Below are positions 5,635-44,139 of a stretch of 44,139 bases of DNA, piece after piece; the stretch's first letter is position 1; each line of letters begins with the position of its first letter. Position numbers and translations under genes: made by a program. The stretch lies in NCBI GenBank assembly GCA_002269645.1, contig NIVC01004495.1, forward strand, positions 1 through 44,139, written 5' to 3'. The notes under the pieces were generated by a model. It was not told the origin of the DNA. It did not search any database and saw only the letters and a list, made by a program, of their open reading frames with translations. This DNA is from Macrostomum lignano (Eukaryota).

Positions 5635-8600
5635 TCAGTATCCTGGCATGTCCAGTGGCTGCTTCCCGAGCCACATCACCCAGAGCAGCTCCACCAGCAG
5701 GACGAGCCCACCGCACACGTACAGGCCCAGGCAGATGATGTAGGCGCCTCCGACACCCTCCAGCGATATGGCCGCCGCCTGAGCAGCCGCGTTGCTGCCG
5801 CCGCAGTCGTTGCTCTGCGGGACGTACTTCCGAGTCACAACATCCACGACGCCGCTCTCCTTGCCGCGCTGAAGACTGCAGAGTTGGGAGGAGTCAGCTA
5901 CTTTAATGGTTTTGAGAATTCACAGGTTTTCGCTTTTCTGGCCTTCTTGGAGGTATCAGCCCCAATAAACCCCCGCTTTGCACTTCAGATCAAAGTTTTA
6001 ATTTCGGCGTATCATTCTCTGCAACGACACACTTCGCACAGAATGTGTACAGTTTGTTTGCATTGCATAAAAACCAGAAGGAATGCGGAATGAAGAAAAC
6101 GTACAGCAAGTCGAACGCCGGCAGGTAATAGGCATCTCTGGGAAACGTCATCGCCTGGTAGTAATAGTTAAAAAGGCTGGTGGCCTGGTACACCTGGCTG
6201 CAGAATGCGCTGGCATAGAACGAGTTGCTGCTCTTGTCCGAGATGCACACCATGTACGGGTCGGCGTCCTTAATCAGCAGCTGGAATGGTCGGCATCAAT
6301 GATATCTATAGCTAATTAGGACCCCATGCATTTTATACAACAGAACAGCCAACAAAGAACCAGGGCATCAGCTCACGGTTTCAGCGCAGGTAGTCATTGT
6401 GTCTACGACAACCATCTGCCTGCGCAGCAAAGCCATGGGTCCGTCAGTTGCCAGCATGATAGTCGCGTAGATGTTGGTGCCCCGGGCAACCATGGCCTTG
6501 TAGTGCGGCATGGAGACCAGGTCTTCCAAGCTTTGGATCGGGTACTCGGCCACCGTCACAGCCAGCTTGGCCGTGAGGTCCCCTGTCCGGTAAGAGAAAA
6601 ACAACAGTAAAATGACGCCGATAACTCACGGCTATCAAGACAAAACTTTGGGTTGTAGCCTACTAGGGGGTTATAGTCTAATGGCTAGAACATCGGACTC
6701 ACGACCGAAAGGTCAGGGGTTCGATTCTCGATCCACCCGGAACAATTTGTGTCCTTGAGCTAGACGCTTAACTCTGCAATGCTTCAGTTCACCCAGCTGT
6801 AAAATGGGTGCCAGCATTAGCTGGGGTAATTGAAAGTGTGTGGCAATCCCTCAGTCCTTGAACTGAACAGCTGTACTCAGCCTTCAGATGCGCCGCGCAA
6901 TAGCTGCGGCTGAGCTGTCGGTTGCACACCTGCCCAGGCAGGTGTAATCAATTAATATTACGTATTGAAAAGACAATGCAGACGTCAGCCTCACCTGTGT
7001 ATGCGCCATAGAGAATAACGGTGAGCATCCACCAGAAGGCCAGAACAGTGCGGGGGCTCATAGCGAAGGGATAGAAGTCCTGGCCCTGCTGCAGGAAGCT
7101 GCCAATCACTGACCAGATGTACTCCTTCAGCCACACCTCATCGGCAAACGCGTACGAGATGCGTAGATTCCACCCGGAGAACGGATTGCAGCTGGCGAGC
7201 ACAAACACGATGATGGGAACGAAGACGAGCATGCCGAGAATGAGCAGCCAGGAGTCCCAGGCCAGCGGCGTGAACACATTCCACAGCTTGGACTCTGATG
7301 GCGGCCGCTTCACCAGAATGGTGTTGGCGGAGAACATGTAGTCCTCTGAGTAGTCGATCACTTGGTAGCGAATGTTGGTGATGGCAAACGGCATGGCAAA
7401 CTCGGCTTCCTGGGAAGAAGGCAACGAGAACAGAGTTTCAGACTGTCAATTCGAGCAAACTGTACTTTATAACATAAATTATCATTAAGCAGGCGCTGTC
7501 CTCACTCCTCTCTGCAGCATGCCGATGCAACCGCTGAAGTAGGGCGATCCTTCGACCGGCGCTCCGAACTGGATATCCGGTGGGGAGAAAATGTCATACC
7601 TGCCGCAATGAAGGTCAATAAGTTTCTGTACTCTATAATGCAACGGAGAATGAGTTGAGGCTCAATGCAAATCTGATTCAGACATACGAAAAATTCAGAT
7701 GCGAGGCATAATAGTTGACCATATCCACCGAGTGGCCAGAAGCCGTGCCAAAGGTGTAGTTGCTGTACCTGGTGAAAGGCGGGAACTGGTTGGGAAAATG
7801 GGACTCGTTATTAGATAAGGTTTATTATTAAAATGTTACAACTACTTTATCACTAACATAAATAACGTCCCGAAATAATTATTTGTTACTTTTTCTTATC
7901 TGAAGAAACAAGCAATGCCCTTCATACCATTTTACGAGCGTAATCCCAATTTCTTATTATGAAGTAAAACATCAAGTCTTCAGCTATTCGTGACTAACCG
8001 GCGGCGCGCAGACCCGCAGTCGAGCTCCCTTGAAGTCCACGAAGGTGTTGGGAAACAGCAGCTCGCGCTCCTTGTACTCGAAGGTCACTACAAGGCTGCC
8101 GTTCTCGACGATAAACCGGCCGCTTGGCACGAGTTCCGCGACTGCGTCCGGGTTGCTGAGCAGGCCCAGCATCTCCAGGAAGTAGTCGCTCCGGTGCCCC
8201 GCACTTCCGTTGGCTGGGCTGAGCCGCTGCTATGAGGCATGCCAGGAAATATGGGGTTAAGCATTAATTACAAGAAGCCGTGCTTCTATTAGGGCAATTA
8301 AGCTTTGCTTTCTGTTCTCTGATTCAGCTATTAAGTATGCCGGTGTAAAGCAAACTCAACCACAAATTGCACATGTCGCTAAGAATCTGAGTCAGACAGG
8401 CAACTGAACTCCAACCTGCTTCAGCTGCGCAGCCACTGCGGGACCCGCCGACCACGGCTGCAGCGGCCGACACGACGCGTTGCTGGCGGTCAGGCCGAGG
8501 TCGGAGCTGTCCAGCAGGCTCTGTGTAGCTCTGGCGAATGACAGCACGGCCTCCAACGCCTTCAGCTCCAGCATCTGAGGGATGTTCAGGGTCTACTGCA

Positions 8601-9908
8601 GATAGATCGCCAGCGCCTAAGCTCCATCGCAGAAGAAGTTTGCAGGGAACGAGTTCCTCACCGAACGCTTGCTGAACTGGCAGTCCGGATACACGACTCC
8701 GAGATCTACAGAGCAGTCCATTTCTTTGAGAAGAACTGTCGACTCACGGATCAAGAGGATGTTCGCAGACTCATTCGCGGGGATCAGAGTCTCGATAGTT
8801 CTTGGCGAAATTCCTGTGTCAATCACAGTCCAGAAGTAGTTGATCTGCAGTGTGGCTGTGTTCCGAGCCTGGAATGACAACCAAATGATATTAAGCCCTA
8901 ATCGATTGCGCGAAAGAATTTGTACCTGAGCTCACCTGCTCGAAGACGAGTGGGATCTTGTCGGGCTCGCAGACGACCACACAGTATCGAATCTGAGCCT
9001 TGACGCTGTTTTGCAGGATTTGGGTCAAATTGGTGGCCCATTCGTCGAACTGAAACATCACGCTGGCGATTCTCTTCTCCGAGAGCAGTTGCTGAAGCTG
9101 CTCAAGCAGCAAGTGGTCTGCAATGACGAGTGTTAGCCACCATGGTTGAGGAAGGCATTGCTGTCAACTTACAGATGGAGCAGTAGTCTTGAGGAAGCCA
9201 TGCGCACCCTGTTGTCTGTCGTGAAGGACAGCGACCAGATTAGCGGAGACTCGGTCCATTGCTTCTGCGGTCGCCCTCAAGAAGTCGGTCGCCAGTGGAC
9301 TCGACACGATCGCTGAGTCTGTAAAGATATGCGATTCATTCTTGTCTGTGATGTAAGCAAGTGTGCGTCAGTAGATAGGTTGTGGTAATAAGGGTTTTAC
9401 CTGGCACACTGGGTAGCCGACAAAGGCCTCTGAGAACTGCGACTGTCGGTAATTGTAGGGAGCCAGAGATTTTGAGCACATCCGAGACGAACTGACAAGA
9501 GCCGACGACGACCAAGCCGTTGAGACCTGTCGATCGACACACTGAAGTTTCAGAAGAGATTTTCCGGGTAAGCAAGCAAGTCGTCGTTGAACCTAATCAG
9601 CTATTGATTGTCACCAAAGTACATAATTTTCTTTCTTAGAATTCTACAATAAATTTGTATCTCAAGCTGTTTTTACCTCTCTGCGCAGCCTCCACTGAGT
9701 CCGCAGTCGGCAGCAGCTCCAGCGACATCGGACTGGTCTTGAATGCCGGATACCTCCAGTTTCCGTTGACCAGCTTGTCCACCGCTGTGGTGATGATCGA
9801 ACTGTCCGCGAGACTTCCGGCTTCGCTCACAACAGCCAGGCGCACGGATGACCCGCTGCAGGCGTGCAGGGCCAGCAGGAGCAGCAGCGTTCGCAGCTCG
9901 TGCCACAT
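5635..9908 (-). CDS. IR-A: ionotropic glutamate receptor / Ionotropic Receptor-like subunit with ATD, 13 exons, ~830 aa, frame intact
   Basis: Exons traced by GT-AG with consistent phase: 9908-9677, 9541-9401, 9318-9208, 9117-8936, 8868-8662, 8574-8416, 8229-7999, 7785-7688, 7599-7506, 7409-6995, 6582-6377, 6280-6105, 5875-5635. Motifs: signal peptide, S1 PFAITNIRYQVIDYS, M1, pore SFLQQG, M3 FWWMLTVILYGAYTGDLTAKL, S2, M4 LEGVGGAYI. Confidence 0.92.
6666..6955 (+). mobile_element. tRNA-derived SINE, copy 1 (intron 10 of IR-A, antisense to host)
   Basis: tRNA-like head with A-box- and B-box-like motifs (ggttcgattc), central tgtgtccttgagc...cccagctgtaaaatgggt domain, and 3' tail gcaatagctgcggctgagctgtcggttgcac shared with the copies at 16052 and 21754. 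Confidence 0.85.
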
Positions 9909-10079
9909 GACTGACTTAAAGATCGCGTGTGTGAGAGCCGCGAGCCGCTGCCGGAGTGGGACACTGGAGCTATTTATTGAGATCTTACTGAACTGAATCC
10001 GGTTTTGGTATCAGATGTTTCCGATCGATCAGAGGCTGGTTATTCAACTGCAGTCTCATTAAGTAAAAATGGAAAGGTT
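7999..10079. repeat. ~2.08-kb block (IR-A exons 1-7, introns 1-6 and ~170 bp upstream) nearly identical to 22147-24214
   Basis: Direct comparison shows about 20 substitutions in the 1263 coding nt, with alignable introns and unrelated flanks. Confidence 0.95.
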
Positions 10080-10439
10080 ACCTTCAATCAGAATGTGATG
10101 CTGCATTGACTTGGCGATGGGGCAGCGCCCGGCTGGAATTTCAGCCAGTTTGCCACCTGAGCTGTCCAATTATCGATAATGGGCTTTGCGCTTTGCCTTT
10201 TTTTGCAATATCTGCCGATGCACTAATGAAATTAGATATCCATCGCAAAGTAATAGTTAACCTATTAATCATTGGGGAGTCAACAAAAACAGAAATAAAA
10301 TGTTTGAAAGAACTTCAAGTAGGATATGACCTTGTTGATTAACCAGTGTTAAGTACGAGCTACCAAGGGGCAAACGATTTTGAATGCAAAAAGCACCAGC
10401 TATCTAGCCTAAGATATCAGATCCTTTGTGAGCTTTGGT

Positions 10440-11000
10440 TCATATAATCTGAGCAACACAAGTCACAATTTCAGCGATTCTCGCCTTGACATCTCAGCAA
10501 TTCTCCAATGAGCCACAGCATTCAGCAATCACCCACGAGCCTTTAATCTTAAGCACTCCCCTGTAAGAGCTTTGACATCTAAGCAAACCCCCATGAATCT
10601 TTTATGGTTGACAGGGGCGATTATTTCATAATTGAACCAATAATCCTAGCCCTAACCCTGCCGAGTTTCAACAATTCCCCTGAGCCTAAGAATTTCACCA
10701 ATTTGCCCTTGAGCTTTTGAAATCTTAGCGATTCCACACATGAGCCTTAACAACTCAGCATTTCACTCCCAACCCCTATGAGCTCGGGCATGTTGGCAAT
10801 TTCATATGATTCTTTTATGGTTGAACCCTAACGTAAACCTATGACTAACCCTGCCGAGTCACAGCATTTCGGCAATTCTCACCATGAACCACAGCATTTC
10901 AACAGTTACCCAATGAACCTTGACATTTCATGAATTCCCTCTGAGTCCCCAAGAATTCAGCAATTCGACTATGAACGTTTGACACCTTAGCGATTCCCTC
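10440..11000. repeat. Degenerate ~30-bp tandem repeat region (tgagccttgacatctcagcaattcccc-like); related units recur at ~12290-12370
   Basis: Recurrent gagcc(t)t.../cagcaatt(c)cc motifs; ttttatggttga...ctaaccctgccgagt is present twice. Confidence 0.55.
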
Positions 11001-11029
11001 CATGTTCGAAATGCCGCATTCCACAATCT

Positions 11030-11625
11030 CCAGGTGGATGATACTTTTCAAGACCTGAGCAGTTGCAGTACGTTAGGCACATGGTTGATGCCTATTTGAT
11101 TTGAGCCCAGAAAGAGGATCGCATGTCCAAGCAGTTCGAAAACTTCTTCGACGGTGGGAAGACAGCAGAATTGCTTAAATACAATAGTTTGATTTCCGTA
11201 GCACGCAATCTGCACATAGTGTACGCAGTATTTTGGACTTTATTTGTCGGCCGATGGATACTGACTGCATTGATCCAGAGATTGTGAAACAATCAGCGGC
11301 TTTCCAAAGCCTAGAAATATCACGGATCTTTGAGTAATAGTTGGTCTTGTGATCCAAGTTGGAACTTTTACTCCAGAAATAGCCGGAGTAACAGGCCATC
11401 AGAGAGAATGTTTAAATGGGGCCAAGAACAGCTAGACTCCTTTGAGAAGGCCCTAAATCGCCTTGCAAACACGCCTAAACTAATCTACCATGATCAGTAC
11501 ACACAGCCTCGCACACAGATGCATCGCGTCCTAAGGGAATCGGCTTCCTGCTCAGGCAGAAGGCCGACAGAAGTTAGGGCCTGGTTCAGACAGGATCCAG
11601 ATTCCTGTCTTGCTACTGCACGATT
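11030..11625 (+). mobile_element. Decayed Ty3/Gypsy pol fragment (end of RT, connection domain, start of RNase H)
   Basis: Across stops and frameshifts: FGLYLSADGY...ISGFPKPRNITDL*VIVGLV, FKWGQEQLDSFEKALNRLANTPKLIYHD, HTDASRPKGIGFLLRQ...LVQTGSRFLS. These are typical Gypsy RT/RNase H motifs. Confidence 0.75.
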
Positions 11626-12905
11626 GTTTTCTGATCCCCTGCTTTGGACCTGCTTGAAGTGCCACCTCATCAGCACCGTCTCAATACCGACATAGAGCGG
11701 CACTGGTTCATATTGGTGTGTCGCCCTCGTGTCGTCAGCGTAAAGGCAGGTTGTAAGTCTCCGTAGAGGGGCTTGGAGGAAGTTACTCGTGACGATCGAC
11801 ACCAGGAGCTGCAAAAACAAAGTTCAATTCGTCCGCGGATTGTCCAATTCCTGAAGATCTATGCAATGGATATTGGCAGCTTTTCCCTTCCTTTTCTTTT
11901 TCTTTCTCTCTTTGTCTCTTATCTTGGGCACAATCTGCATCTTGTGAGTCCTGAATTGACAATTGTCAGGCTCGTATCAAGTTTTTTAACTCTCGCCTGC
12001 AACAGGAAGTAGGATGCAGGATCGATGTCAGGATCTACATGGCTTATAGACAAGCAACAAAATGCTAAATAGGCCCCTGGATCATCTGCGAGTTCAAAGC
12101 TGAATCTGGCGTGAAAGTTTCTGTTGATCAAAAGAATTGGCAACAAGATCTTGTTTATCTGGGTTTGACTATTCAGCCTCTCTGAATACCGCTCGGGTCA
12201 AGATTTAGTAGCCACTAGCAATTTACGCCCCCCGTTGGGGAGCAAACAAAGAATGTACTAAATTTTTTAAATAAACTACATGTAGCTTCTAACCTTAGCC
12301 TTAACATCTTAGCAATTCCCCCCAAGACTTGAGATCTCAGCAATTCCCCCAGTAAGCCATTCCCCCAGTAATCGATTTTCGAATATTTCGTCGACAAGGC
12401 AACTCGTTCGTGAGGGAGAGTGAATGTTGTGTAGCTGTTTTGCAGATATGTACATCTGCTATGTACATCTGTTTGCCGATGTTAATCTGTCGCAACTAGA
12501 TAAATATATAAGTATAAATATACCAGTCGAAAGGCCAACTTGGTTTAAGTTCGTGTGTACCCACAAAAATCAGTTTGACTATCTCAACACAACACCATGC
12601 AGTTTCCAACGGTCAGAATCTCGACACCACTGCTTCTTGTTTCGTGAAGATTTTAAATAAAAAGAAATATGAATAGGCATATTGAATAGACCAGGTGCAT
12701 AAAACAGAGTTGACATCTAAACAGATTATCTTATTTTAATTTGGGCTTGTAAATAGTTGTTATTCTGCCTAACCTGGCTTATTCTGTCTGTACAAGTATC
12801 AGAATAATGCGAGGTAGATCTTGTATAGATTAGTGCTATATATTGTAGTGCACTGGCTTTGCTAATGTTAAATAAAGCTTACTGAACACACAAATAGAAA
12901 GAAAA

Positions 12906-15485
12906 ATGCGTGACCGGAATTGGAAAAAGGGCTTCATTTTTGTTGCTTTGCTGCTCTGCTCGCTGGCAGCCGGCCAGGTCTCCCAGTGCGCTCCCGCTGA
13001 CTCTCCGCGGCTCCGCTTCGTGGCGCAGCTCAGCGTGAACGGCTGCGCGCTGTTCGTGCACGACACGGGAGCGAGCGACGGTCCGCACTTGGCAGTCGAG
13101 CCGCTCATGTGCGTGACGGACAGCCTGAGAGGCATTGCTGCTCGATTCGACTTCATCACCCAGCAGCTGTACTTCAGCGTTCCTGTATTGATGAGGGATG
13201 CTGGGATGCTCGCAGATGCTCAGCGTCAACTGCGGCATCTGTCACCGAGGTCTGTGAGCTTCGCCACGGTCACCAACATCAGCGTCTCAGCCGACTTCAG
13301 CTCATTAATCCGGGTTTCTGACATCCTGTGGACTCCAGATGAACCAATCGCCACCCTGAGACTGCAAATTGAGAAGAGGGCCCGCAGCAGTGTGTGCCAA
13401 GCTGCAAGCAACTTGAGACTGGCAAATGTGCCTCGAATGCAAAGTCTGAGTTCATTAGAAATCCAGCCAGAGCAGAATGCCAACTTTAGAAGTTCGCCCG
13501 GCGAGGCCCTTGAAAAAGTTAGGCTGTCAGCTTCTATCATTTCGAACGGCTCTTGCTATGAAGTTCAGAGACACGTCCTGCTGCAAAACAGCAGCTTCTT
13601 CGACTTGGAATTCGGCAGACAAAGATTTGCAAATGTGTCGAATTGCCGACAGCTTCGGTTCATCCGCTCCGTCAATCTCGAGAACTGCTCAGTCCGAGTG
13701 CACCAGAGACTCGACATGAAGGGCCACTTCCTCATCGAGCCTCTGCTGTGCCACAACATCTCCAGCTTGAGCAGCGAGTCAGTCAGGTATGACTATAGCC
13801 GAGACATGCACTACCTGAAGCTGGATGTGGTGCTGCAAGATGAGGCCACACGCGATGCTGTGAGGACTCAGCTGGCCGACCTGTCGCCTCGATCGGTCGA
13901 TTTTATGCGGCTGTGGACTGCTGAGAGATCGGTGAGCTCCTCGTTGAGTTCTCGGTTCGAGGTCGGTCCGCTGATGGTGTCGACAGACTGGAAGTCCGCT
14001 CAGCTGCGGCTGCTCTGCGGAAGCTCGGGGCTGTGCGACGAACTCAGGTTTGATAATTGCTTGGAGAAACAGAAACAGAATTCACTTTACCTCACGACAG
14101 TTCTTTAAAATTCTGAGTGTTTTATTTGCCCAGTTGCCCTGATGTCTCACAGACCCTAAGGACCCCGTTTCAATGGGTCTTTCCAAATTCAAAATTCATG
14201 TCAACCAGTTCATTTCATTTCAAATGAATTTTTTTTGGAATATAACAGTGAAAAGCATTCGTCTTAAGAAAACTGAAATGGTTGACCTTTTTAGTGGCCC
14301 TCAAGAATTGCTTTAATTATTGTTTTCAGAGGTTACGCGTATTTTGGTGTTGTATTGCAATCTAAAAACTCCGCTGAATTTCAGATCGGCGGTGCTGAAT
14401 GAGCCCGCGGATTTGTGGCGACACCTGAGGTGGCGGGTGACGTCTCTGGTTGCTGACCAGTGCCGATCCGAGTCGGTCCAGACAACTTTATCATGGAGAA
14501 TGAAGGCGTCGGCAAGTGCGAGCTGCTCGAGTCCGCAGTCATGCGCCGCCGCTGACTCTTCTTACGCGCTTCAAGTTCAGCGAGACGGCCGCTGCTTCGT
14601 AAAGATTCAGCAGCGACTCACCGGCAGAGTGAGTTTCCAACGAGGCTGGACTGAGTACGAGACTGGCTTCGGTGACGGCACTGACTTCTGGATCGGTGAG
14701 CGGCCGCTTCGCGTTCGCAGCTCTGCTAACAGAGATAAAGCGTCTGCTTCATAACAAAGCTGATAAATTTGGCTGCACTGGCGCCTGGCAACCTGATCCT
14801 TCTCCCTTCCTCTCTTTCCCATCCCGCCTCGTTGCAGCCAGCCGCTGAGAATGCAGCAAGGTTTACTACCCTATTCAACATGTAAATACGATCACGAACT
14901 TAAACCAACCAAGGCAATTTACATTCTCCTGTGATCCAGTGAAAGCTCCGATTCGAAGGACAGTAGCCATACAATTTATGTTCGTTTTCGTCTGTTTTAC
15001 AGGTGTGTCACTAAAATGCCTGACCAATCAGAAGTGACCCAGACTCTGCCGCTTAATTTCTTCCCACAGGCCTCTCCACCATCCACTTGCTGAGCCAGGG
15101 CGGCGTCACTTTCAGATTGGAGATGAAGCTCTGGAACGGCTCTGAGCTGCATGCGGAGTACGCGGGATTCCAGGTGGGAGATGCCAGCACTGGGTATCGG
15201 ATGACGTACCGAGAGATGCTGAAGAGCAGGTCCAGTTTGAACTATGATGAACTGCAGAAAAACTCAGGAATGCGGTTTTCCACAATAGACAGGGACAATG
15301 ACGAAAGCAACCCAGGGTCATGCACAAACAGGTATGGAAAAGGAGGCTGGTGGTTTCGAGACTGCAACCACTCCAACCCGAACGGGATTTTTCCTGTGCG
15401 GGAGACGGCAAATAACAGCTATATGACCTGGTGGTGCGAGACTTGGCTGTATCTCCGTGAAGTGCGAATGCTGCTGCAGATATGA
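12906..15485 (+). CDS. Secreted fibrinogen-related domain (FReD) protein, 3 exons, ~622 aa, with two N-terminal ~214-aa repeats of unknown family
   Basis: Exons 12906-14047, 14385-14695 and 15070-15485 join in frame at GT-AG sites (phases 2 and 1). Signal peptide FIFVALLLCSLAAG. Fibrinogen C-terminal (FBG) domain motifs IQQRLTGRVSFQRGWTEYETGFG..FWIG, FSTIDRDND and GGWWFRDCNHSNPNG. Confidence 0.9.
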
Positions 15486-16051: not shown

Positions 16052-16300
16052 GGGGAGTGGCCCAGTGGTCAGAGCGTCGGACTCACGACTTGAAGGTCGG
16101 GGGTTCGATTCCTGATCTCACTTGGAACAATTTGTGTTCTTGAGCAAGACACTTCACTCTGCATTGCTTCCATTTTGCCCAGCTGGGGTAATTGACAATG
16201 TGTTTGGCGATCCCCAGTCCTTGGACTGAACAGCCGTACGCAGCCTTCAGATGCGCCACGCAATAGCTGCGGCTGAGCTGTCGGTTGCACATCTGCCCAT
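16052..16300 (+). mobile_element. tRNA-derived SINE, copy 2 (intergenic)
   Basis: A box tggcccagtgg, B box ggttcgattcc, and the same body and tail as the copies at 6666 and 21754. Confidence 0.85.
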
Positions 16301-17449: not shown

Positions 17450-17962
17450 TCCATTGCTCATTCTGCTGTCTGTAGTCATGAACAATTCCTGTTCCATTGC
17501 TCATTCTGCTGTCTGTACTCATGAACAATTCCTGTTCCATTGCTCATTCTGCTGTCTGTACTCATGAAAATTTTAGTTCCATTGCTCATTCTGCTGTCTG
17601 TACTCATGAACAATTCCAGTTCCATTGCTCATTCTGCTGTCTGTACTCATGAACAATTCCTGTTCCATTGCTCATTCTGCTGTCTGTACTCATGAACAAT
17701 TCCTGTTCCATTGCTCATTCTGCTGTCTGTACTCATGAACAATTTTAGTTCCATTGCTCATTCTGCTGTCTGTACTCATGAACAATTCCAGTTCCATAGC
17801 TCATTCTGCTGTCTGTACTCATGAACAATTCCAGTTCCATTGCTCATTCTGCTGTGTGTACTCATGAACAATTCCAGTTCCATTGCTCATTCTGCTGTCT
17901 GTACTCATGAACAATTCCAGTTCCATTGCTCATTCTGCTGTCTGTACTCATGAACAATTCCA
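17450..17962. repeat. 43-bp minisatellite (tccattgctcattctgctgtctgtactcatgaacaattcctgt), ~12 copies
   Basis: Units start at 17451, 17494, 17537 and so on. Confidence 0.95.
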
Positions 17963-24042: not shown

Positions 24043-24214
24043 GACTGACTTAAAGATCGCGTGTGTGAGAGCCGCGAGCCGCTGCCGGAGTGGGACACTG
24101 GAGCTATTTATTGAGATCTTGCTGAACTGGAGCCGGTTTTTTGTATCAGATGTTTCCGATCGATCAGAGGCTGGTTATTCAACTGCAGTCTCATTAAGTA
24201 AAAATGGAAAGGTT
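22147..24214. repeat. Partner of block 7999-10079 (IR-B exons 1-7 plus upstream sequence)
   Basis: Near-identity starts at the last base of exon 7 and ends at ...aaaatggaaaggtt. Confidence 0.95.
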
Positions 24215-24896
24215 CTAACGAGATCAGGCGATTTTCAAGGCAGCATAAGATGGGATGTGTTCTGTACTACATCCTGATGTCTGTCTTTGCAGCCAGAAAG
24301 ATCTCACCTTTTTCGGATAACAAGCTTGAGTCGATTGGGTTTCCAGTTACAGCTATTTAGTCGCGGTGCTGTTGGTCCGGTGGCAAAACACCCGCGGTAG
24401 CAGGGGCTCAGGACTGCTGAGTTCCGCATCTCTATGAAATAGAATCTTCCGCAGGGCTTGGCAACCTTCAAATTGCCTGGCTTCACCTTCGATATCTTAT
24501 TTAATGAGGTTCGCTTCAGCGATCGGGTTTCTCATTGTCCACGCGGGACTTTTCCTTCATCAAACCTAAAGAACGCTGGTTTTTTTATTTTAGTAGTAAC
24601 ATCCAAGGTCACTATTGGTACGAAAGGGTATTTCCTGAAACAACCCCGTAAAAGCAAGAGCTCAAATTAAAGCTAAATTTGGCGCATCGAATGCAAACAG
24701 GGATGCTAGAAATTGGAAAAACTCTTTAAGTAGAAAATATTTTTAAGCTCACGCAGGCGAGACGCAAAGAAAGGGGCGACGGCGCCACGACTTTCGCCAA
24801 AATACTTGTAGTACAGTTATAAAAAGGTAAAAAAAGATTATCCTAGATCATGTGGCTTTTACTTTTTAAGTTTAATAACGTTTTAAGCATCATATA

Positions 24897-29300: not shown

Positions 29301-30720
29301 TAGTGAATGCCAGGATAGGTATAAAGTGTGCCAAAAACAATTATGAATTCGCACCTCTCGTAAAACGGCGTCGACATTTTCAGGCGTGCACAGAACCAAT
29401 GTGTTGCGATAACGCTTCCAAACGACGTTTCTCAGTATGCTGGTCAGGTTGCTTGCTGAGTCATCGATTTGGAAAGTCAGGCTGGGGATGCTTTTATCCG
29501 ATAGCAATTGCTGCAGCTTCTCCAGAAGACGGTGATCTGCAATCAGATTAGAGAGCTTGTGAGACTCACACTGCAAAGCTGTACGTGCACCTTTGTGACT
29601 TACCTTGATACTTATCGTAAAAGACAACGACGGCCTTTTGCTCGAGCCGACTCACGATTGTCGCAGCAGCTTCCAGGAAACTTCCGACGTCCGGGTTCGA
29701 GATTAGAGTCACGGCTGCAAAATTGTGAGGAATGCAAACTCTTTAACTGACTGTTTCATGGAGCACATGTCATAAAGACAAAGATTGATAAATATCATTA
29801 CGATTGGTATTGTTGATGAAGCAGAGGTCGCGAAAGACAGCGACTGCCGGCACGCTGATTGAGGTGGAGACGGCCAGAACGTCGGTCACGAAGGCGCAGG
29901 AGCCCACGGCGACTACTCCGTGCAGGCCGGGTGTGTTGCACACTGGAATTTTTTTTTCAGTCTTCATAGAAAACTGCACCTATGCAAATTTTGTTTGCCT
30001 GTGGCTTGGTGACAGTGACAGATTTATTGACCATACTCGTACGTTGCTAGACATGCTACTTGTAGTGTGACAAATCGTTTTGCTCGGTTTGGATTATGTT
30101 TTAAACTGGCATTTATGGAAGTGTCTAGACTTATGTGCCTTGAATTACGCTTGTAGCTAATCTGTCTGTATTGTTAAGTTTTAAATCGAAAAAGAATGTG
30201 TTGAAGATATAAAACCGAGGCAGGTGCAAAACAACTGGTAGTGTAGTGCATCTTGGTTTCTAATGTGTATCGAAATCTGACTCTCCTCAGGAGTCTCTGA
30301 CTTTAAAGCGGAAATGATATTAGCAATATTCTGATGGCCTAGTTTAATCGCTCAGTAAATATTTAGATTTGTAGATTTGAGCGATTAAGGAGATAAGCTA
30401 CAAGGTTATCTCCTTATCCGAGCGACAGAACCACAACGCCTCATCTGAAAAGCTTATTAGTAATAAGACCAACCAGTTCGCATAGCCTCGACAGCATCGC
30501 TGGCCTGAACAAAGACGTGCGTCATGGGGTTTGTCTTGAATGCCGTCAGCTTCCAGTAGTTGTTGATGAGCAGGTCGATGGCTCGGCCCACGGCCAAGTC
30601 TCCAATGCTGCCGTTCTGAGCGACCACCGCCAGTTTGACGGCTCCTGCGCAGGTGGACAGCGCGAGGAGAGCGCAGAGCGGCGCGGCGACAGCTCGGAAG
30701 CTGGCGTGCCAAGCGGTCAT
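26383..30720 (-). CDS. IR-C: iGluR/IR-like subunit with ATD, 13 exons, ~836 aa, frame intact
   Basis: Exons 30720-30474, 29942-29802, 29714-29604, 29536-29355, 29263-29051, 28974-28822, 28740-28507, 28435-28338, 28250-28157, 28085-27671, 27438-27233, 27124-26952, 26626-26383. The sum is 2511 nt, in frame. Confidence 0.92.
28517..29951. repeat. ~1.43-kb block (IR-C exons 2-7 with introns) nearly identical to 38240-39674 of IR-D
   Basis: Direct comparison. Exon 1 (30474-30689 vs 39817-40040) is also nearly identical, but intron 1 is unrelated. Confidence 0.93.
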
Positions 30721-31589
30721 CTCACTGGCTGGACTGAAGGACGGGGGACTCTGTAGCCGGAAAACAAAACTTGGTCAGCCTCCCCCGCAAAATCCTCTCG
30801 CTTAAATATGCGCCAATGTTTATCCGTGATTGGCGAAGCTGTGGCCGGTTGAGTCAAGCGTTTGTGATAATTCCAAATTTGATTGCTTCTTATTTGCGAG
30901 AATCAAAATGACCCGATTATCGGATTGGTGCAAGCTTACATTGATTCGTCACTTAGACTTTGCTAAGCCCCATAGAACCTGAGCTGTCAGTCAATATTCC
31001 CTGTCTCGAAGTCACATCGCTTCGCAACGCCGAGCTGCTGGGCTCAGCTTTTCTATTGAATTCAGCAGGTCATTAGCGCCGCTGCTCCGTCTATGGATCA
31101 ATAATCTGCTCACAGCTCACCTTCATATCTGATTTCCGTGAAGATAATGAGGCTTCGAGAGTTGAATAGCAATCGAAGAAGACTTCCGATGGATAGTTAT
31201 TGATCTCCCACAGCCCTAGCCCGTTTTTTATGATGAGGTACTTGTTTGCTTTACTCAATCAGTTATAAAAGTTTTCTGACTCTACCTCCAGCTTTCTAAT
31301 GGCCGGAAGTCAATATTTTCTCAGCTTTCCCTTCGCACGTCAATAAAGCTCGGTTATAAATAAATCTATCCATTCTTTGGCTAGATTGTGCTTCATTGCT
31401 CATCTGTGGCTGTTTTTGCTTTTAAAGTTGAGAATAATTCTTATTGAAGCCGGATTTCTACCTAGGTTTACTTTAATTACAGGTTAATTACAGATTTTTG
31501 ATGCACCCTTTTCGATTCAATTAGTCACATCAGCGTTTGCGACTAACTTCGTCAAGCCATTCATTTAAACCGCATTGTCGGCTGATTTT

Positions 31590-33260
31590 CCATGCAAGAA
31601 TGGCATTCTTGCACTCTTTTGCGTGCAAGAATGGATGTCTATGGTAAAATCTCACTGAAAAAGCATTAGGCGCAGAAATGCATTCCTGCACGGTTTTGTG
31701 CATTCCTGCACGATGAATCATCCGACAATGGAATTCCTTCACGTTCACTCGTGCGTGAAGGACATCGTGCACTCGTGCGCTAGCGCGCACTCGTGCAGAT
31801 GTCATTCCCGCACTCGTGACCGTGCAGGAATATAGCATTCTTATTTGATTCTGCGTGCAGGATTGCTGATCTGGCACGCCCAAGCGTGCAGAATTGATGT
31901 TGTCTATGGCAAATTATCCTTTAGGTCTAATGCATCTTACGTGCAGGATTGCAATTTATTTTTAGACAACAAGAAAACAACGAGTGAAAATTGGTTAATA
32001 TCATTACTATTTTTTCGCTTGCGATCAGATGCTACTCAAATACAAATTCAATGACGTTGGTGTCACCATTGGCTCGAATCTTCAAATTCTTCCGATTTTC
32101 CGGAATAACTCGCACACAGCGCACCGAGCCCGACGTAGGATCATTGATAACGTCAACTAGGTCACTTGCCTCAGTGCCTACAACTTGAGGGTCGGCCGTA
32201 GTAGCCACCTCCACGGCAGCCGTTAGTTGATGGCTCATAGCACAGATCGCTTGCTCTCGTTTATTCCCTCGTCGAATGTAGCGCTCGACGGATGCACCTC
32301 GCTTGTGGCCAGTCACTTTAGCGATAGTTTCGACATTAAATCCAGCGTCGTGAAGTTCTGTGATTACAGTTGCACGCACACAATGCGCAGTGTATGGCTT
32401 GGACAATCCGGCGGACGTAGAAATTTTCTTCATCAGAGGCCCAAGGGTGTTGACTCCTACTGCACTCTTGCTGTACGAGCTCGTACCACTTACCAGATGA
32501 ACGAAAGTTAGCGTTTGGTCGCAGAAAGAAGTCCACTCCGTTCCATCCTTCAACTTCGGTGACCTTTTGCTTGTACAGTCTGAACGCCTCAACTGGGCAT
32601 TTGGCAGAATCTCCCTTTGACACCATCAACGCTTGCTTGTTGTCAACCATGACGGCGACGCTGGTAGAACCATGTAGATTCTTTGAATCTCCCTGAACAA
32701 GCTCAATCGCGTAGAGTCCATTGGCGAGCCGCTTCTCACAAAACCGATCAAACCTCAAACCACGCAACCATTCACGGCCTCTATTCCCATAGTAATAAAT
32801 GACGTTAAAGTATACTTCCTCTTGAAGACGCACCGGATTCGACCGATCGAAGTATTTACCGAGCTTCTTCAGGTCGTCACTCTCAATAGCATCGTAGTGC
32901 TTCACTCTTCCTCCAGATCGAAGGAAAGCGTTGCAAATGTTTTTATAGTGGCAACTAGCTTTCAATTGTAATCTCCTTTCGTTACCCCCTCCCCTCTTCA
33001 TCTCCAGCGTGCAAGATTGATTTTGTCTATGGTTAAAATGTGGGGGCTTCGCCCCCACGCCCCCAGCGGGGCTCTGCCCCCGCACCCCCGCTAGCAGCGG
33101 GTAATGTCTATAGTAATATCAATTATAACCTCCTTTTTTGGGCAGAATTTAAAATGGAAGAATCAAATAAGAATGAGATTCATGCACGCCAACTCGTGCG
33201 TCTATGGCAAAGAGCACTCGTGCGCTTCGCGCACTCGTGCTTTTGCCAATGACGCACTCG
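31590..33260 (-). mobile_element. Crypton-like tyrosine-recombinase (YR) DNA transposon; boundaries approximate
   Basis: YR ORF bracketed by clusters of cactcgtg and tgtctatgg motifs; no long terminal inverted repeats seen. Confidence 0.7.
32032..33001 (-). pseudogene. Tyrosine recombinase (Crypton/DUF3504-type), frameshifted by a 10-bp insertion at ~32477-32486; ~319 aa if repaired
   Basis: Overlapping ORFs 32336-33085 and 32032-32592 give EDLKKL-like DDLKKL, YGNRGRE (R), DSKN (K), CPVEAFRLY, YTAHCVRAT (HxxR), VTGHK (H) and SVERY (Y). Confidence 0.85.
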
Positions 33261-33524: not shown

Positions 33525-33920
33525 ATGACTCATGTGCTATCTAAGGAACTATTCATGGCTCATGTGCTATCTAAGGAACTATTCATGGCTCATGTGCTAT
33601 CTAAGGAACTATCCATGGCTCATGTGCTATCTAAGGAACTATTCATGGCTCATGTGCTATCTAAGGAACTATCCATGGCTCATGTGCTATCTAAGGAACT
33701 ATTCATGGCTCATGTGCTATCTAAGGAACTATTCATGGCTCATGTGCTATCTAAGGAACTATTCATGGCTCATGTGCTATCTAAGGAACTATTCATGGCT
33801 CATGTGCTATCTAAGGAACTATTCATGGCTCATGTGCTATCTAAGGAACTATTCATGGCTCATGTGCTATCTAAGGAACTATCCATGGCTCATGTGCTAT
33901 CTAAGGAACTATTCATGGCT
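33525..33920. repeat. 30-bp minisatellite (atggctcatgtgctatctaaggaactattc), ~13 copies
   Basis: Direct tandem repeat. Confidence 0.95.
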
Positions 33921-34813: not shown

Positions 34814-35452
34814 TTGCCTCAAGCACTCAAACACTCGGCTACCTGATGCAGGGTTGCCTCAAGCACTCAAACACTCGGCTACCTGATGCAGGGTTGCCTC
34901 AAGCACTCAAACACTCGGTTACCGGATGCAGGGTTGCCTCAAGCACTCAAACACTCGGTTAACGGATGCAGGGTTGCCTCAAGCACTCAAACACTCGGCT
35001 ACCTGATGCAGGGTTGCCTCAAGCACTCAAACACTCGGTTAACGGATGCAGGGTTGCCTCAAGCACTCAAACACTCGGCTACCTGATGCAGGGTTGCCTC
35101 AAGCACTCAAACACTCAGTTACCTGATGCAGGGTTGCCTCAAGCACTCAAACACTCGGTTACCTGATGCAGGGTTGCCTCAAGCACTCAAACACTCGGTT
35201 ACCTGATGCAGGGTTGCCTCAAGCACTCAAACGCTCGGTTACCTGATGAAGGGTTGCCTCAAGCACTCAAACACTCGGTTACCGGATGCAGGGTTGCCTC
35301 AAGCACTCAAACACTCGGTTGCCGGATGCAGGGTTGCCTCAAGCACTCAAACACTCGGTTACCTGATGCAGGGTTGCCTCAAGCACTCAAACACTCGGTT
35401 ACCTGATGCAGGGTTGCCTCAAGCACTCAAACACTCGGTTACCTGATGCAGG
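34814..35452. repeat. 40-bp minisatellite (acctgatgcagggttgcctcaagcactcaaacactcggtt), ~16 copies
   Basis: Direct tandem repeat with few variants. Confidence 0.95.
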
Positions 35453-36177: not shown

Positions 36178-36311
36178 AACTGAGTCACTTGCTCCAATGT
36201 CAGCAACTGAGTCACTTGCTCCAATGTCAGCAACTGAGTCACTTGCTCCAATGTCAGCAACTGAGTCACTTGCTCCAATGTCAGCAACTGAGTCACTTGC
36301 TCCAATGTCAG
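36178..36311. repeat. 27-bp minisatellite (aactgagtcacttgctccaatgtcagc), ~5 copies, just downstream of the IR-D stop
   Basis: Direct tandem repeat. Confidence 0.93.
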
Positions 36312-36354: not shown

Positions 36355-39300
36355 TTAAAAACCCGGAAAATCCAGCGGCTCGTTCCTTAGTTTGAACACC
36401 CAGAAAAGCTCCACGAGCAGGATGACGCCGCCGCACACGTAGAATGCTAGACTGACGATGTAGGCACCGCCAACGCCCTCCAGGGGGATGGCCGCAGCCT
36501 CAGCAGCCGCGCTGACGGCGGAGCCGCACTCGGCAGTCTGGGGATGTACTTGCCAGTGATCATGCTCATGACGCCGTTCGCTTTGCTTCTCTGAATCCTA
36601 AAAGAAAAAAAAACTGCTCCATTCAGAACTGTTTGAGAGTAAAAACATTTCAAAAATTCTCTTCCTAAAATTCCATCCATCATGCATTCGCTGACAACCT
36701 GAGACTAAACTACAGAACTTCTGAGCTCCAAGCCGTCAGCCATTCAGGCCAACTCACAGGAAGTCAACCGCGGGCAGGTAGTAAGCGTCCTGAGGGAAGG
36801 CCATGGCCATAAAGTACGGGTTGAAGTAGTTGTCGGCGTTGTAGATGTCTTCGCACAGCTCGTTGGCGTAGTGCAGACTAACAATCAGATCCGAAATGCA
36901 CACCAGGTATGGGTCCTTGATGGTCACCAGCTGCGCGATTCGAGGAATACGAAGACTATTTTTAAAATTGGATTCGCATTTTCGCAAGCAAACACTCTTT
37001 GTTCAAATTTGAAAAACGCTACGCTGAATTGACGCATCAAATCCAAAACTACAAGCCAAAGCAATCATCGCTGGACTTACATTCGTAGCGCAGGTGTCGA
37101 AGGAGTCAACTAACTCCCACTGATCCCTAAGCTTGGCAAGCGGCCCCTCTGTGGCGCTCAGCACAGCAGCGTAGATGTTGGTGCCTCTGGGCAGCATGGC
37201 CTTGTAGTGCGGCTTGGAGATGAGATCGTCCAAGCTCTGGATTGGGTACTTGGCCACAGTCACTGCCAGCTTGGCCGTGAGGTCACCTGCAAATGAGAGT
37301 CCCTGTATTGCTGCATGGTTTCATGCATTGCTGACAAGTCACAGACGCACCAAACTTACCAGTGTACGAAGCGAATATGATAACCGTCAACATCCACCAG
37401 AAAGCCATCACCACTCGAGGACTCATGGCAAAGGGATAAAAGTCCTGACCCTGCTGCATGAAGCTGCCAATCGCTGACCAAATGTAATCCTTCAGCCAGA
37501 CCTCGTCAGCAAAGGCGAAGCTGAGTTGAAGGTTCCAGCCAGTGAATGAGCTGCTGCTAGCCAACCCGTAGATGAGAAGCGGCACTACCAAAAACATGCT
37601 CACAATTAGAGTCCAGGAATCCCAGTAGAGCGGCGCAAACACATTCCACAGCTTGGACTCGGCCATGGGTCTTTTCACCAGAATGGTGTTGGAGGAGAAA
37701 ATAAACTCTTCTGAATAGTCAATCACCTGCGACCGGATCAACGTGGTGGCAAAGGGCGTAGCAAAGTCGGCCTCCTGCAATTCGTCCGCGGACCGTTTCC
37801 AGCTTAATGTAGTCTCTATTCAGCATATTTATTTCTCGCAAAAGGAAAAAACAAGGGCACTCACTCCCTTCTGAACCATTCCGATACAGCCTGTGTAGAA
37901 GAGCGAGCCAGGGACTGGAGCCCCAAACTGGTTGTCTGGGGGCGTAAAAATCGTGTAACTGAAAGTAAAAAAGTGTTTCCGATTAAAATAAAAATTTGAG
38001 ATTCAGCTGTTCGACTTAAATAACATCAACATCTCTTAAATCGGCATTACCTAAAATTCAGATGTTTTGAAAAGAAAGCTGCCAGATCAGCAGTGATACC
38101 CGAGGCAACGCCAAAAGTTCCGTTTGAGTACTCAGTTTGTGGTTTCGTCTAAAATGCGAAACAATGCGAAACAAATGCGAAACAAAGAGGACACGACAGT
38201 TGGTTTACTAACAAGAAAAATCAACGAACCGCAACAGAACAAATCCGAATAGTCTTGTTCTTAAAGTCGATAAACGTGTTGGGGAAGATGAGGCTCCGAC
38301 CTCTGTAGCGGAAGCTGACCTCTAAAGAGCCGTTCCCTACAAAGAAACGGCCGCTGTTGACGAACCGGACCGGGTCGGAGAACTCGTCGTGGAACGTCGC
38401 CTGCACCTCCAGAAAGTAGTCGCTGGGTGTCCAGCTGCTCCCAGCTGACAGCGGCTGTCGCAGCTACAAAGGTGAACGGTTTCGACTGAGCAGACTGAGA
38501 CAGACGACATCATCCATGAGCACCTGCTCCGGTACGATCCGTACCTGCTTCAGCTGCGCAGCTAGTGCGGGACCCGCCGACCACGGCTGCAACGGCCGAC
38601 ACGACGCGTTGCTGGCAGGAAGACCGGAACTGTCCAGTAGGCTCTGCGTAGCGCTGGCGAACGACAGCACGGCCTCTACTGCCTTCATCTCCAGCATCTA
38701 CAGTCATGATCAGAGTCTGGGGCTGGTGACAGCGCCTAGAATCTATTGCAGAAGTGTGTAAATAAAGGCTTACCGAGTATTTTCTCATTTGGCAGTCCGG
38801 AAACACGGCCTTGAGCTGTGAGGTGCAACCGGCTGAGGCCGTTTTCAAGTCTATGGGCGACTCTCGGATCACAAGAATGTTTGCAGACTCGTTTGTAGGG
38901 AGCAGGTCCTCGATGGACACAAGTCGAACTCCCGTGTCGATCACTGTCCAGAAGTAGTTGAGTTTCAGTGTGCCCGTGTTCCGAGCCTGTGTTGAGAAAG
39001 GCTCTAATGAATTAACATGCTCTTAGTGAATGCCAGGATAGGTATAAAGTGTGCCAAAAACAATTATGAATTCGCACCTCTCGTAAAACGGCGTTGACAT
39101 TTTCAGGCGTGCACAGAACCAATGTGTTTCGATAACGCTTCCAAACGACGTTTCTCAGTATGCTGGTCAGGTTGCTTGCTGAGTCATCGATTTGGAAAGT
39201 CAGGCTGGGGATGCTTTTATCCGATAGCAGTTGCTGCAGCTTCTCCAGAAGACGGTGATCTGCAATCAGATTAGAGAGCTTGTGAGACTCACACTGCAAA

Positions 39301-40063
39301 GCTGTACGTGCACCTTTGAGACTTACCTTGATACTTATCGTAAAAGACAACGATGGCCTTTTGCTCGAGCCGACTCACGATTGTCGCAGCAGCTTCCAGG
39401 AAAGTTCCGACGTCCGGGTTCGAGATTAGAGTCACGGCTGCAAAATTGTGAGGAATGCAAACTCTTTAACTGACTGTTTCATGGAGCACATGCCATAAAG
39501 ACAGAGTTTAATAAATATAAATACGATTGGTATTGTTGATGAAGCAGAGATCGCGAAAGACAGCGACGGCCGGCACGCTGATTGAGGTGGAGACGGCCAG
39601 AACGTCGGTCACGAAGGCGCAGGAGCCCACGGCGACTACTCCGTGCAGGCCGGGTGTGTTGCACACTGGAATTTTACGGACATGAAAAAATCATTTGTAC
39701 CTAAACCTAAAATTCGGCTACCTTCCGTAAAAATTGGGGTTGAAATGGTTCGCTCCGTGGCTCAAAATTATACTGCATTAACTGGCGATGCAGTGAGTAT
39801 ACCAGCGCACGCGTACCAGCTCGCATAGCCTCGACAGCATCGCTGGCCTGAACAAAGACGTGCGTCATGGGGTTTGTCTTGAATGCCGTCAGCTTCCAGT
39901 AGTTGTTGATGAGCAGGTCGATGGCTCGGCTCACGGCCAAGTCTCCAATGCTGCCGTTCTGAGAGACCACCGCCAGTTTGACGGCTCCTGCGCAGGTGGA
40001 CAGCGCGAGGAGAGCGCAGAGCGGCGCGGCGACAGCTCGGTCAGAAGCTTTAGTATCAGGCAT
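36355..40063 (-). CDS. IR-D: iGluR/IR-like subunit with ATD, 13 exons; apparent 1-bp deletion in exon 13 at ~36540
   Basis: Same exon plan as IR-C. Exon 13 reads YIP|QTAEC only if one base is restored (IR-C ctgtgggatg vs IR-D ctggggatg); it then ends in EPLDFPGF*. Confidence 0.88.
38240..39674. repeat. Partner of block 28517-29951
   Basis: Direct comparison. Confidence 0.93.
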
Positions 40064-41127
40064 CTCACTGGCTAGATTTGTTGTTGTTTCGAGCGTAGAT
40101 TTTTTCGGGCAGATTGGAGAATTCGACGCTACAGTCAGATTTTTATACTGGGGGCCTCTGACGGACTACTCAGGAAAGCTGATGCATTCTAATTATTGGC
40201 CTCGTTATTAGGAAAAGCTCCATTTTCTCATGGCGAGTCCCCTTGTAAACTTGAATATCCAATGCATTGATTCGCGTTAATTAAGAGCTTTGGCGAAGAT
40301 GCTTTGCCTTGGAGGACAGACTGCATTTTTCAAGAAATTCTTCTTTGGTTTGCGTTACCAGCCCTTGGCAGTCTTGTTGTGTCGCGAATAGCTTGTTTTT
40401 ACATGGTGTCGCATTTTTGATGGTTATGCAAGATGATCCGAAGGGGCTCTTTACGTCGTTTTCGATGGGGTCATGGTCGATTTATCAATAGGATTGACCA
40501 TTTCTGTTCTTTTTAAAGTAATCTGCAAATTAATGGCGTTGCCATGTTCGATTCCATGTTCAGCTCACGTTGCACATGAGCAGCTTTGGCAGAGTAGCAA
40601 ACACGGCTGTTTCACAGTGAGCCACAGCCGCTTTCAGATGGGCAAAGGACACAAAAAGACATCTTGGCCCATAGTGAATATTTCTGTAATAGTAATTAGC
40701 TTTCTTAATACCTGCTTTTAGTTACGCTGCAAAAATTGAAATCATCTTCTTCACAACACTTTTGATTCATCCTTTTAAAGAGGAAGTTTTTGAGAAGTTG
40801 AGGCACTGCTTCGTTCATATACTAAGCTCGTCACTAGTGGTATAAAGCGAATATTCTTGAGCTGCTTGGTGTTGAGACAGCTGACTCACCATTTCATTAA
40901 CGGAAATGTATTTCGTTTTATGTCAAAATCTACATCTGAGGACTCAATATTGATAGCAAGAATATAGAAAATCTCTGATAATTTACGGCATCCAATTAAC
41001 TGCAGACTGTTCAATTAATCAGGGATCCAAGAATCGATATTGGCAGTTCAAGCGCGAATGCTCTGTTATATTCAGAGTCACCTAAAAACCCGACAGATGG
41101 ATGGATCGATATTTTTAAAAAAAATTT

Positions 41128-41132
<5 letters not shown>

Positions 41133-41158
<26 letters not shown>
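41133..41158. repeat. (GA)n microsatellite
   Basis: About 13 GA units. Confidence 0.95.
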
Positions 41159-41163
<5 letters not shown>

Positions 41164-44115: not shown

Positions 44116-44139
44116 ACTAAAGTTGAAATGTGAATGCTA

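Follow-up and report, generated by a model that had tools for sequence, protein, structure and literature searches.

What kind of receptor is encoded by an array of divergent ionotropic glutamate receptor (iGluR)-like genes in the flatworm Macrostomum lignano: a set of chemosensory channels that manage without a separate coreceptor, as a sequence-only reading of the DNA had proposed, or amino acid receptors of a more familiar type? The array occupies positions 5635 to 44139 of a stretch of 44,139 nucleotides (contig NIVC01004495.1 of assembly GCA_002269645.1, analyzed over its whole length and referred to here as the window). M. lignano is a free-living macrostomid and a transgenic model amenable to RNA interference. 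An early transcriptome survey counted 67 M. lignano sequences with iGluR activity, compared with 12 human genes (PMC3447372), and flatworms were not sampled in a major iGluR phylogeny (PMC6307864). We conclude that the five genes of the array, g1 to g5, probably encode subunits of a flatworm-specific branch of non-NMDA (AKDF-like) iGluRs that expanded by tandem duplication in the Macrostomum lineage and that would function as working amino acid-gated channels.

RESULTS

Five paralogous genes in direct orientation

Self-BLASTN comparison and spliced gene models resolved five paralogous iGluR-type genes that share one orientation and are encoded by the minus strand; in the self-comparison, they appeared as five direct repeats of a 4- to 5-kb unit starting near 5633, 19528, 26380, 36357, and 41435. 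The g1 model was read by hand from three-frame displays and projected onto the other copies with a protein-to-genome spliced aligner, and doubtful junctions were corrected by eye.

9908-5635, minus strand: g1, intact, 13 exons, 839 amino acids (aa)
24042-19530, minus strand: g2, intact, 13 exons, 839 aa, with exon lengths and phases as in g1
30720-26383, minus strand: g3, intact, 13 exons, 844 aa
40063-36355, minus strand: g4, 13 exons, 844 aa (conceptual), frameshift in exon 13
From beyond 44139 to 41435, minus strand: g5, only exons 8 to 13 inside the window, frameshift in exon 10
9908-9677, 9541-9401, 9345-9208, 9117-8936, 8868-8662, 8574-8416, 8229-7999, 7785-7688, 7599-7506, 7409-6995, 6582-6377, 6280-6105, and 5875-5635, minus strand: the exons of g1, read by hand and checked by spliced alignment
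44116-44019, 43946-43853, 43767-43354, 42913-42708, 42610-42438, and 41678-41435, minus strand: exons 8 to 13 of g5

The window is eukaryotic DNA with short GT..AG introns, and most of it has a GC content of 44-53%. Exon lengths match across g1 to g4 (232/247, 141, 138/135, 182, 207/213, 159/153, 231/234, 98, 94, 415, 206, 176/173, and 241/244 nt), every intron is of the GT..AG type and lies at the same position, and the intron phases are identical (1,1,1,0,0,0,0,2,0,1,0,2). Exons 8 to 13 of g5 follow the same scheme; just 23 nt of the window lie upstream of its exon 8, and its exons for the amino-terminal domain (ATD) fall beyond the window end. An AATAAA signal is present 63 nt past the stop codon of g1 and 32 nt past that of g3, and no further fragments of the family were found within the window outside g1 to g5. 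The shared intron positions and phases on which the sequence-only reading had relied thus hold for all 13 exons of g1 to g4 and for the six visible exons of g5. Its tandem array of at least five same-strand paralogs stands as regards number and direct orientation, on the minus strand, but the array is not contiguous, being interrupted by a fibrinogen-domain gene and a Crypton-like element. The observation is therefore partly confirmed: it was essentially right, with corrections to the strand, the fifth ATD, two frameshifts, and these interruptions.

Two copies carry a single break in frame. In exon 13 of g4, a 1-bp deletion between 36541 and 36540 shifts the frame just before M4 (g4 reads ATCCCCAGACTG [ATCCC-CAGACTG] at the position where g3 reads ATCCCACAGACTG), and in exon 10 of g5, one G is missing (GCCTGG-ACACG) between 43615 and 43614, shifting the frame just before M1. 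Both genes are otherwise free of stops and well conserved. The frameshifts could be assembly errors, single (null) alleles, or marks of young pseudogenes; because the database protein P0024 has the g4 C terminus in an intact frame, the g4 defect may have arisen in assembly or be confined to one allele. Look-ups of P0003, a database match of g1, and of P0024 among contigs yielded no match.

Domain architecture

Each complete gene encodes a signal peptide, an ATD of ~400 aa, S1, M1, a pore loop, M3, S2, M4, and a tail of 11 to 12 aa, the region before S1 amounting to ~420 aa with the signal peptide included. In Pfam searches with g1, g3, and frame-corrected g5, Lig_chan scored 77-80 bits (cutoff, 30.8) and Lig_chan-Glu_bd scored 48-61 bits (cutoff, 30); the values for g3 were 79.5 and 60.6 bits, with ANF_receptor at 28.8 bits, above its cutoff of 25.4, and the ANF_receptor match of g1, at 20 bits, was below it. 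A profile restricted to the N-terminal 420 aa matched the ATDs of GluD1 (2.4e-10) and GluD2 (2e-7) and also the ATD structures of GluK1 to GluK3, down to 3e-3. The best solved structures for the full protein were those of the AMPA receptors GluA4, GluA2, and GluA1 (~1e-40, ~141 bits), with the alignment beginning at residue 150 and reaching the end of M4. The genes thus possess the S1-M1-pore-M3-S2-M4 core of the iGluR superfamily, and g1 to g4 possess an ATD of the ANF_receptor/LIVBP type that, judged by these matches, is real though divergent. The sequence-only reading had credited all five genes with an ATD of ~420 aa; four could be observed, and these bear it out, that of g5 lying outside the window.

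That reading had also noted an almost complete lack of a cytoplasmic tail, and this was found in all five genes: 11 to 12 aa follow M4, with a conserved end, PLD(M/F)PG(Y/F), that is realized as PLDMPGY or (S/T)LDFPGF. Because more distant, 42%-identical paralogs end in PLDCIIY or PLDCFFY, the short tail and its terminal motif characterize the family and do not result from a missed exon.

Ligand pocket and pore

The pocket was mapped through a HMMER alignment to GluA4 together with an alignment of the family. Positions are numbered as in mature GluA2.

Y450: Phe or Trp in most members, Ile in one paralog
P478: mostly Pro
T480: Ala in g1 to g5, P0005, and P0006; Thr in the more distant P0008 and P0010 to P0012
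R485: invariant Arg, in g1 to g5 and every family member covering the site
G653: Arg, Gln, Arg, Arg, and Leu in g1 to g5, respectively; Lys, Ala, Thr, Asn, or Glu elsewhere
S654: Gly
T655: invariant Thr
L704: Ser in g1 to g5; Ala, Thr, Asn, Glu, or Val elsewhere
E705: invariant Asp, in g1 to g5 and every family member covering the site
Q/R site (586): invariant Gln
+4 site (590): invariant Asp

The corresponding features of the DNA are as follows.

6473-6484, minus strand: alpha-F motif R-G-T-N of g1, equivalent to GluA2 G653-S654-T655
6484-6482 (g1, Arg), 20626-20624 (g2, Gln), 27340-27338 (g3, Arg), 37188-37186 (g4, Arg), and 42815-42813 (g5, Leu), minus strand: codons for position 653
6995-7409, minus strand: exon 10 of g1, running from the end of S1, where the ligand Arg lies (PFAITNIR), through M1 and the pore loop (GSFLQQGQDFYP) into the first part of M3
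7091-7077, minus strand: pore QQGQD codons of g1
21213-20799 (g2), 28085-27671 (g3), 37774-37360 (g4), and 43767-43354 (g5), minus strand: homologs of exon 10

Both cysteines of the ligand-binding domain (LBD) and the aromatic lid are kept. In mutagenesis across diverse iGluRs, Arg485 is absolutely conserved, position 653 (the first residue of the alpha-F GST motif) is the main determinant of selectivity, and the beta10 LE position (704) is a second contributor; residue 653 is Gly in all glutamate-selective receptors aligned in that study and non-Gly in glycine-selective and other receptors (PMC13648236). Passages in two further papers link Arg at 653 to glycine binding in ctenophore receptors (PMC6307864, PMC8437780). 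Across the present family, position 653 takes eight different residues and is never Gly, and position 704 varies as well. We infer that the genes encode amino acid receptors, the agonist of which is unlikely to be glutamate and is likely to change from copy to copy. The LBD had been described as divergent. This applies to overall identity, which does not exceed 31% with any non-Macrostomum protein, but not to the residues that hold the ligand backbone, which are intact; on the alignment, the LBD is better described as a conserved amino acid pocket with a hypervariable selectivity position.

The M3 motif of g1, AYTGDLTAKL, is interrupted by a phase-1 intron after YT. Six-frame translations of the window contained no SYTANLAAF-like motif, because the gate motif of the family is degenerate and split by this intron. 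Lower conservation of the gate motif has also been reported for Lambda and some Phi receptors (PMC6307864).

Relatives and phylogeny

A HMMER scan of 1.84 billion representative proteins, with a database protein that includes g1 (P0002) as the query, returned 3270 matches. Those with at least 42% identity came from M. lignano wherever a name was found, and the M. lignano entries include BOX15_Mlig017883g2 of the NCBI annotation; identity then dropped to 31% or less, in a range occupied by other M. lignano iGluR-like proteins, mollusc "delta-1-like" proteins (automatic names), and proteins of cestodes and Fasciola. The best-scoring named nonflatworm relatives among the matches that were looked up were "delta-1-like" proteins of Pecten and Haliotis with N termini of ATD length, and one of the closest, Pecten maximus P0014 (29% identity), may belong to Phi/Zeta (GluF).

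Neighbor-joining trees were built, under two distance corrections, from 101 sequences of the LBD and transmembrane domain (TMD) drawn from the top 150 matches, a set without NMDA, Epsilon, labeled Phi/Zeta, or verified IR25a/IR8a references. The family formed a clade with 100% bootstrap support, and its closest neighbors in the trees were likewise from flatworms: 57% of replicates placed M. lignano P0013/P0026 as the sister group, and ~35% placed neodermatan proteins there. The AMPA/kainate clade SYTANLAAFLTVER (amphioxus GluA P0088, bird GluK2 P0080) contained no family member in 90 of 100 replicates; nesting inside a canonical synaptic class with one-to-one orthologs, the result that the sequence-only reading had named as contrary to it, was thus not observed. 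Membership in the AMPA class is likewise contradicted by position outside the AMPA clade and by the motifs R/Q/L-G-T and S-D. With no reference for tuning ionotropic receptors (IRs) in the tree, the family also lay outside a clade comprising the crustacean IR93a-like protein P0118 and many proteins with a conserved TYSGNLIAFLT motif, which we take to be IR25a-like, and, in the absence of vertebrate delta sequences, the amphioxus "delta-like" proteins P0031 and P0073 fell in another clade than the family. The gap in identity and the bootstrap value together make an expanded, lineage-specific family, as had been proposed from the array itself, well supported by the sequence comparisons.

Homogenization of the ATD and selection within the array

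Divergence between neighboring copies is distributed very unevenly along the genes.

7994-10079 versus 22142-24214, minus strand: g1/g2 high-identity tract, 97% identical with introns included, extending from ~170 bp 5' of the ATG through exon 7
28504-30739 versus ~38227-40076, minus strand: g3/g4 high-identity tract, 95-100% identical except for an indel in intron 1, ending at the exon 7/intron 7 junction

In the ATD half, g1 and g2 are 97.4% identical, with a synonymous divergence (dS) of 0.033, and g3 and g4 are 96.9% identical (dS, 0.031); in the LBD-plus-TMD half, the values are 73% (dS, 0.92) and 85.5% (dS, 0.63), respectively. The tracts span introns and ~100-170 bp 5' of the ATG, the remainder of each gene being 55-85% identical, and both stop where exon 7 meets intron 7, at the boundary between ATD and LBD. 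The simplest reading of this pattern is recent gene conversion, or unequal exchange, of a 5' module between neighbors that had been duplicated much earlier. The shared boundary of the tracts may reflect selection or merely a loss of homology in intron 7. The ratio of nonsynonymous to synonymous divergence (dN/dS) was 0.16-0.30 in all pairwise comparisons but those of the near-identical ATDs of g1 and g2 (0.36) and of g3 and g4 (0.64), and it was 0.16-0.25 across the LBD and TMD; because of the 0.16-0.30 range, we regard the copies as being under constraint. On these estimates, the family evolves by birth and death under purifying selection, with the ATD half recently homogenized in neighboring pairs. 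Homogenization limited to the ATD is a small new observation.

Neighboring features and database models

The other features of the window are listed here.

12906-15485, plus strand: fibrinogen-domain gene (FReD/FREP-like) between g1 and g2, with exons for a fibrinogen C-terminal domain
32035-33118, minus strand: Crypton-like tyrosine-recombinase element between g3 and g4, with a weak DUF3504 domain plus a phage-integrase-type domain in two overlapping open reading frames (ORFs)
2693-3481, plus strand: claudin/PMP22-like ORF (PMP-22/EMP/MP20/claudin domain, 35.5 bits), on the g1 side of the window in a GC-rich stretch
6666-6960 (g1 intron 10), 16071-16299 (intergenic), and 21755-22048 (g2 intron 7): three copies of a short interspersed repeat
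3521-3992, 17450-17962, 19809-20022, 24896-25500, 33525-33920, 34814-35452, and 36178-36311: minisatellites, between and inside genes

The fibrinogen-domain gene includes a 400-aa ORF that has a signal peptide, an internal duplication of ~190 aa, and no Pfam match, and the fibrinogen C-terminal exons follow. This plus-strand ORF (12906-14108) was rejected as part of the iGluR finding, since it has no iGluR features and adjoins the fibrinogen-domain exons. The combination of DUF3504 with a tyrosine recombinase is that of Crypton-type DNA transposons. An AT-rich region at 1-2000 (31.5% GC) adjoins the GC-rich stretch with the claudin-like ORF. One minisatellite, at 24896-25500 between g2 and g3, is a perfect 14-bp unit repeated 43 times, and another, a 36-bp unit repeated 6 times, lies inside intron 12 of g2. 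A tRNA-derived short interspersed nuclear element was considered as the source of the interspersed repeat, in which a T-arm-like stretch was seen by eye, but was rejected, as ARAGORN and Rfam called no tRNA.

UniProt entry A0A1I8JJF5 (P0002; 1162 aa, M. lignano) includes the g1 protein and is identical to it over the exons common to both models. Set against window positions 5635-14081, it proved to be a chimeric mis-model: its first ~340 aa are the antisense of the neighboring fibrinogen-gene ORF, several of its ATD exon borders are wrong, and one stretch is in the wrong frame. P0003 also matches g1, P0007 matches g2 (98% identity over exons 6 to 9), and P0024 matches g4. P0006 and P0009 are likewise chimeric, both being fused to retroelement ORFs. 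A 40%-identical member of the family, at 10159-12846 of NIVC01000845.1, carries the NCBI annotation BOX15_Mlig017883g2 and adjoins an Unc5-like gene; an ATD-like tblastn match lies ~9.5 kb upstream of it, and the annotated 571-aa product is probably truncated.

DISCUSSION

The family and the AMPA receptors (GluA1 to GluA4) have the same domain order from ATD to M4 and the same FxQQGxD pore, in which the Q/R site is Gln and the +4 site is Asp; Arg485, Thr655, the two LBD cysteines, and an aromatic lid residue (Phe for Y450) are retained as well. The family differs in overall similarity (~141 bits, roughly 25-30% identity), in alpha-F (R/Q/L-G-T versus G-S-T), in beta10 (S-D versus L-E), in the Ala at T480, in M3 (YTGDLTAKL versus SYTANLAAF), and in its tail of 11 to 12 aa. 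With the delta receptors (GluD1/2), whose ATDs are the best matches of its own ATD profile, it has a non-Gly residue at 653 in common, but the spiralian "delta-1-like" proteins, whose names are automatic, are only 29-31% identical to it, and those of molluscs keep TYTANLAAFLT. The molluscan Phi/Zeta (GluF) receptors described by Zeng et al. in 2021 (PMC8437780) are, like g1 to g5, a spiralian tandem expansion of ATD-bearing AKDF-type genes with a conserved Arg485 and an acidic residue at 705; however, positions 653 and 655 vary in GluF, whereas in the family 655 stays Thr and 653 and 704 vary, and the family belongs to another phylum and to a separate clade (in a set without labeled GluF), has a degenerate gate, and has a homogenized ATD. 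Arg at 653 in g1, g3, g4, and several paralogs recalls the glycine-gated iGluRs of the ctenophore/Epsilon group, but these form another subfamily, and g2 and g5 have Gln and Leu at this position. Protostome IRs (Croset et al. 2010, PMC2924276) resemble the family in their divergent lineage-specific expansion, their short tail, and, for g1 to g5, the loss of one of the three classic glutamate contacts (Thr480, which more distant paralogs keep); the family differs from them in having a clear ATD in an expanded set, in keeping the Arg and the Asp, and in lying outside the IR93a-like clade. Among the Drosophila IRs, only IR8a and IR25a have a discernible ATD (PMC2924276).

An expanded family that keeps its ATD had been presented as unusual. 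Such expansions of AKDF receptors have been described in molluscs (PMC8437780), and loss of the ATD is a property of arthropod IRs that does not extend to expanded iGluR families at large. The framing of the genes as tuning IRs with an ATD is similarly not sustained, given the invariant Arg485, Asp705, aromatic lid, LBD cysteines, Q/R Gln, and +4 Asp, which give the proteins the look of amino acid-gated iGluRs and not of IRs whose pocket has been rebuilt. The kind of system is therefore already known; the g1-g5 clade itself is undescribed, and no paper describing it was found in the literature.

If g1 to g5 are subunits of an AKDF-like branch, as we favor, they would most likely assemble as tetramers into cation channels that open in response to a small amino acid, since the contacts to the alpha-carboxyl group (Arg485) and the alpha-amino group (Asp705) are invariant. 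The pore has Gln at the Q/R site together with Asp at +4, a combination that accompanies Ca2+ permeability and polyamine block in AMPA/kainate receptors. Several points weigh against this conclusion. The M3 gate motif, (A/S/T)YTGDLT(A/S)KL, keeps 4 of the 9 residues of SYTANLAAF, departing from the superfamily pattern, and has gained an Asp and a Lys; this suggests unusual gating, and the altered gate could leave the channel nonconducting or ligand independent, which is largely the case for vertebrate delta receptors. In the window sequence, two of the five copies have a frameshift, the equivalent of Thr480 is Ala in g1 to g5, and the prediction of ligands from positions 653 and 704 is explicitly called unreliable in the study that established their role (PMC13648236). 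The trees lacked references for several receptor classes, as detailed above, and no expression or functional data on any member of the family were found in the literature.

Where such receptors would act is a matter on which the evidence divides. They may be peripheral chemoreceptors, for instance, for dissolved amino acids from food, with an ATD of their own that lets them assemble without a coreceptor of the IR25a/IR8a type. We hold this view tentatively, and we give the same limited credence to a role as internal receptors, at the synapses or neuromuscular junctions of flatworms, for a transmitter or modulator (glycine, alanine, serine, or GABA, for instance), with the copies providing subunit diversity. 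A lineage-specific tandem expansion with possible pseudogenes is the birth-and-death pattern typical of chemoreceptor families, variation is concentrated at the selectivity positions 653 and 704, and the very short tail is devoid of long scaffold-binding sequences. A weak additional point is that g1 to g5 and their close paralogs exist only as ab initio UniProt models and are absent from the NCBI annotation of M. lignano, as might be expected of genes expressed weakly or in a restricted pattern. An expansion is not by itself evidence of chemosensation, however, because the Epsilon and Phi expansions of amphioxus are enriched in the nervous system and scallop GluF is broadly expressed (PMC6307864, PMC8437780), and the pocket is of the classic amino acid receptor type. 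No molecular study of chemoreceptors in flatworms was found in the literature. The full iGluR architecture, with the backbone-binding residues and the pore Q/D intact, favors an internal receptor, as do the gating of AKDF and Epsilon receptors by glycine, GABA, and other ligands in many invertebrates (PMC13648236) and the presence of related divergent iGluR-like proteins in parasitic flatworms (cestodes and Fasciola), which is a hint that an internal function is conserved across the wider group. Such a role sits less well with the rapid turnover and gene conversion of the array, with a tail that carries no recognizable synaptic anchoring motif, and with the lack of one-to-one orthologs of more than 31% identity outside Macrostomum.

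Two further proposals seem to us improbable. The proteins might not be ligand-gated channels at all, acting through the ATD as delta-like adhesion molecules or organizers, or the array might be decaying, with g4 and g5 already pseudogenes. The best ATD matches to delta receptors, the strongly altered gate, and the two frameshifts would agree with this, but the dN/dS of the LBD and TMD, the invariant pore loop, and the invariant ligand Arg and Asp indicate selection on channel function and ligand binding, g4 and g5 are free of stops apart from single-base deletions, and the intact g4 C terminus in P0024 suggests that errors of assembly or single alleles may account for the frameshifts. The other proposal, to which we attach as little weight, is a constant/variable system in which conversion would keep the ATD, as the assembly module, nearly identical while the LBD/channel halves and position 653 diverge, so that neighbors would freely coassemble into heteromers of mixed specificity and serve as combinatorial amino acid chemoreceptors without a dedicated coreceptor.

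In summary, the array appears to hold amino acid-gated iGluR subunits of a flatworm-specific branch, and the general picture of iGluR evolution is unaffected by it. A mis-fused public gene model, A0A1I8JJF5, is corrected. For M. lignano, the family provides a compact, testable set of candidate amino acid receptors, and its paralogs amount to a series of natural mutants at and around position 653, the main though poorly predictable determinant of agonist choice. The homogenization of the ATD alone offers a clean case in which to ask whether, in a multimeric receptor, the domains for assembly and for ligand binding are subject to distinct evolutionary regimes.

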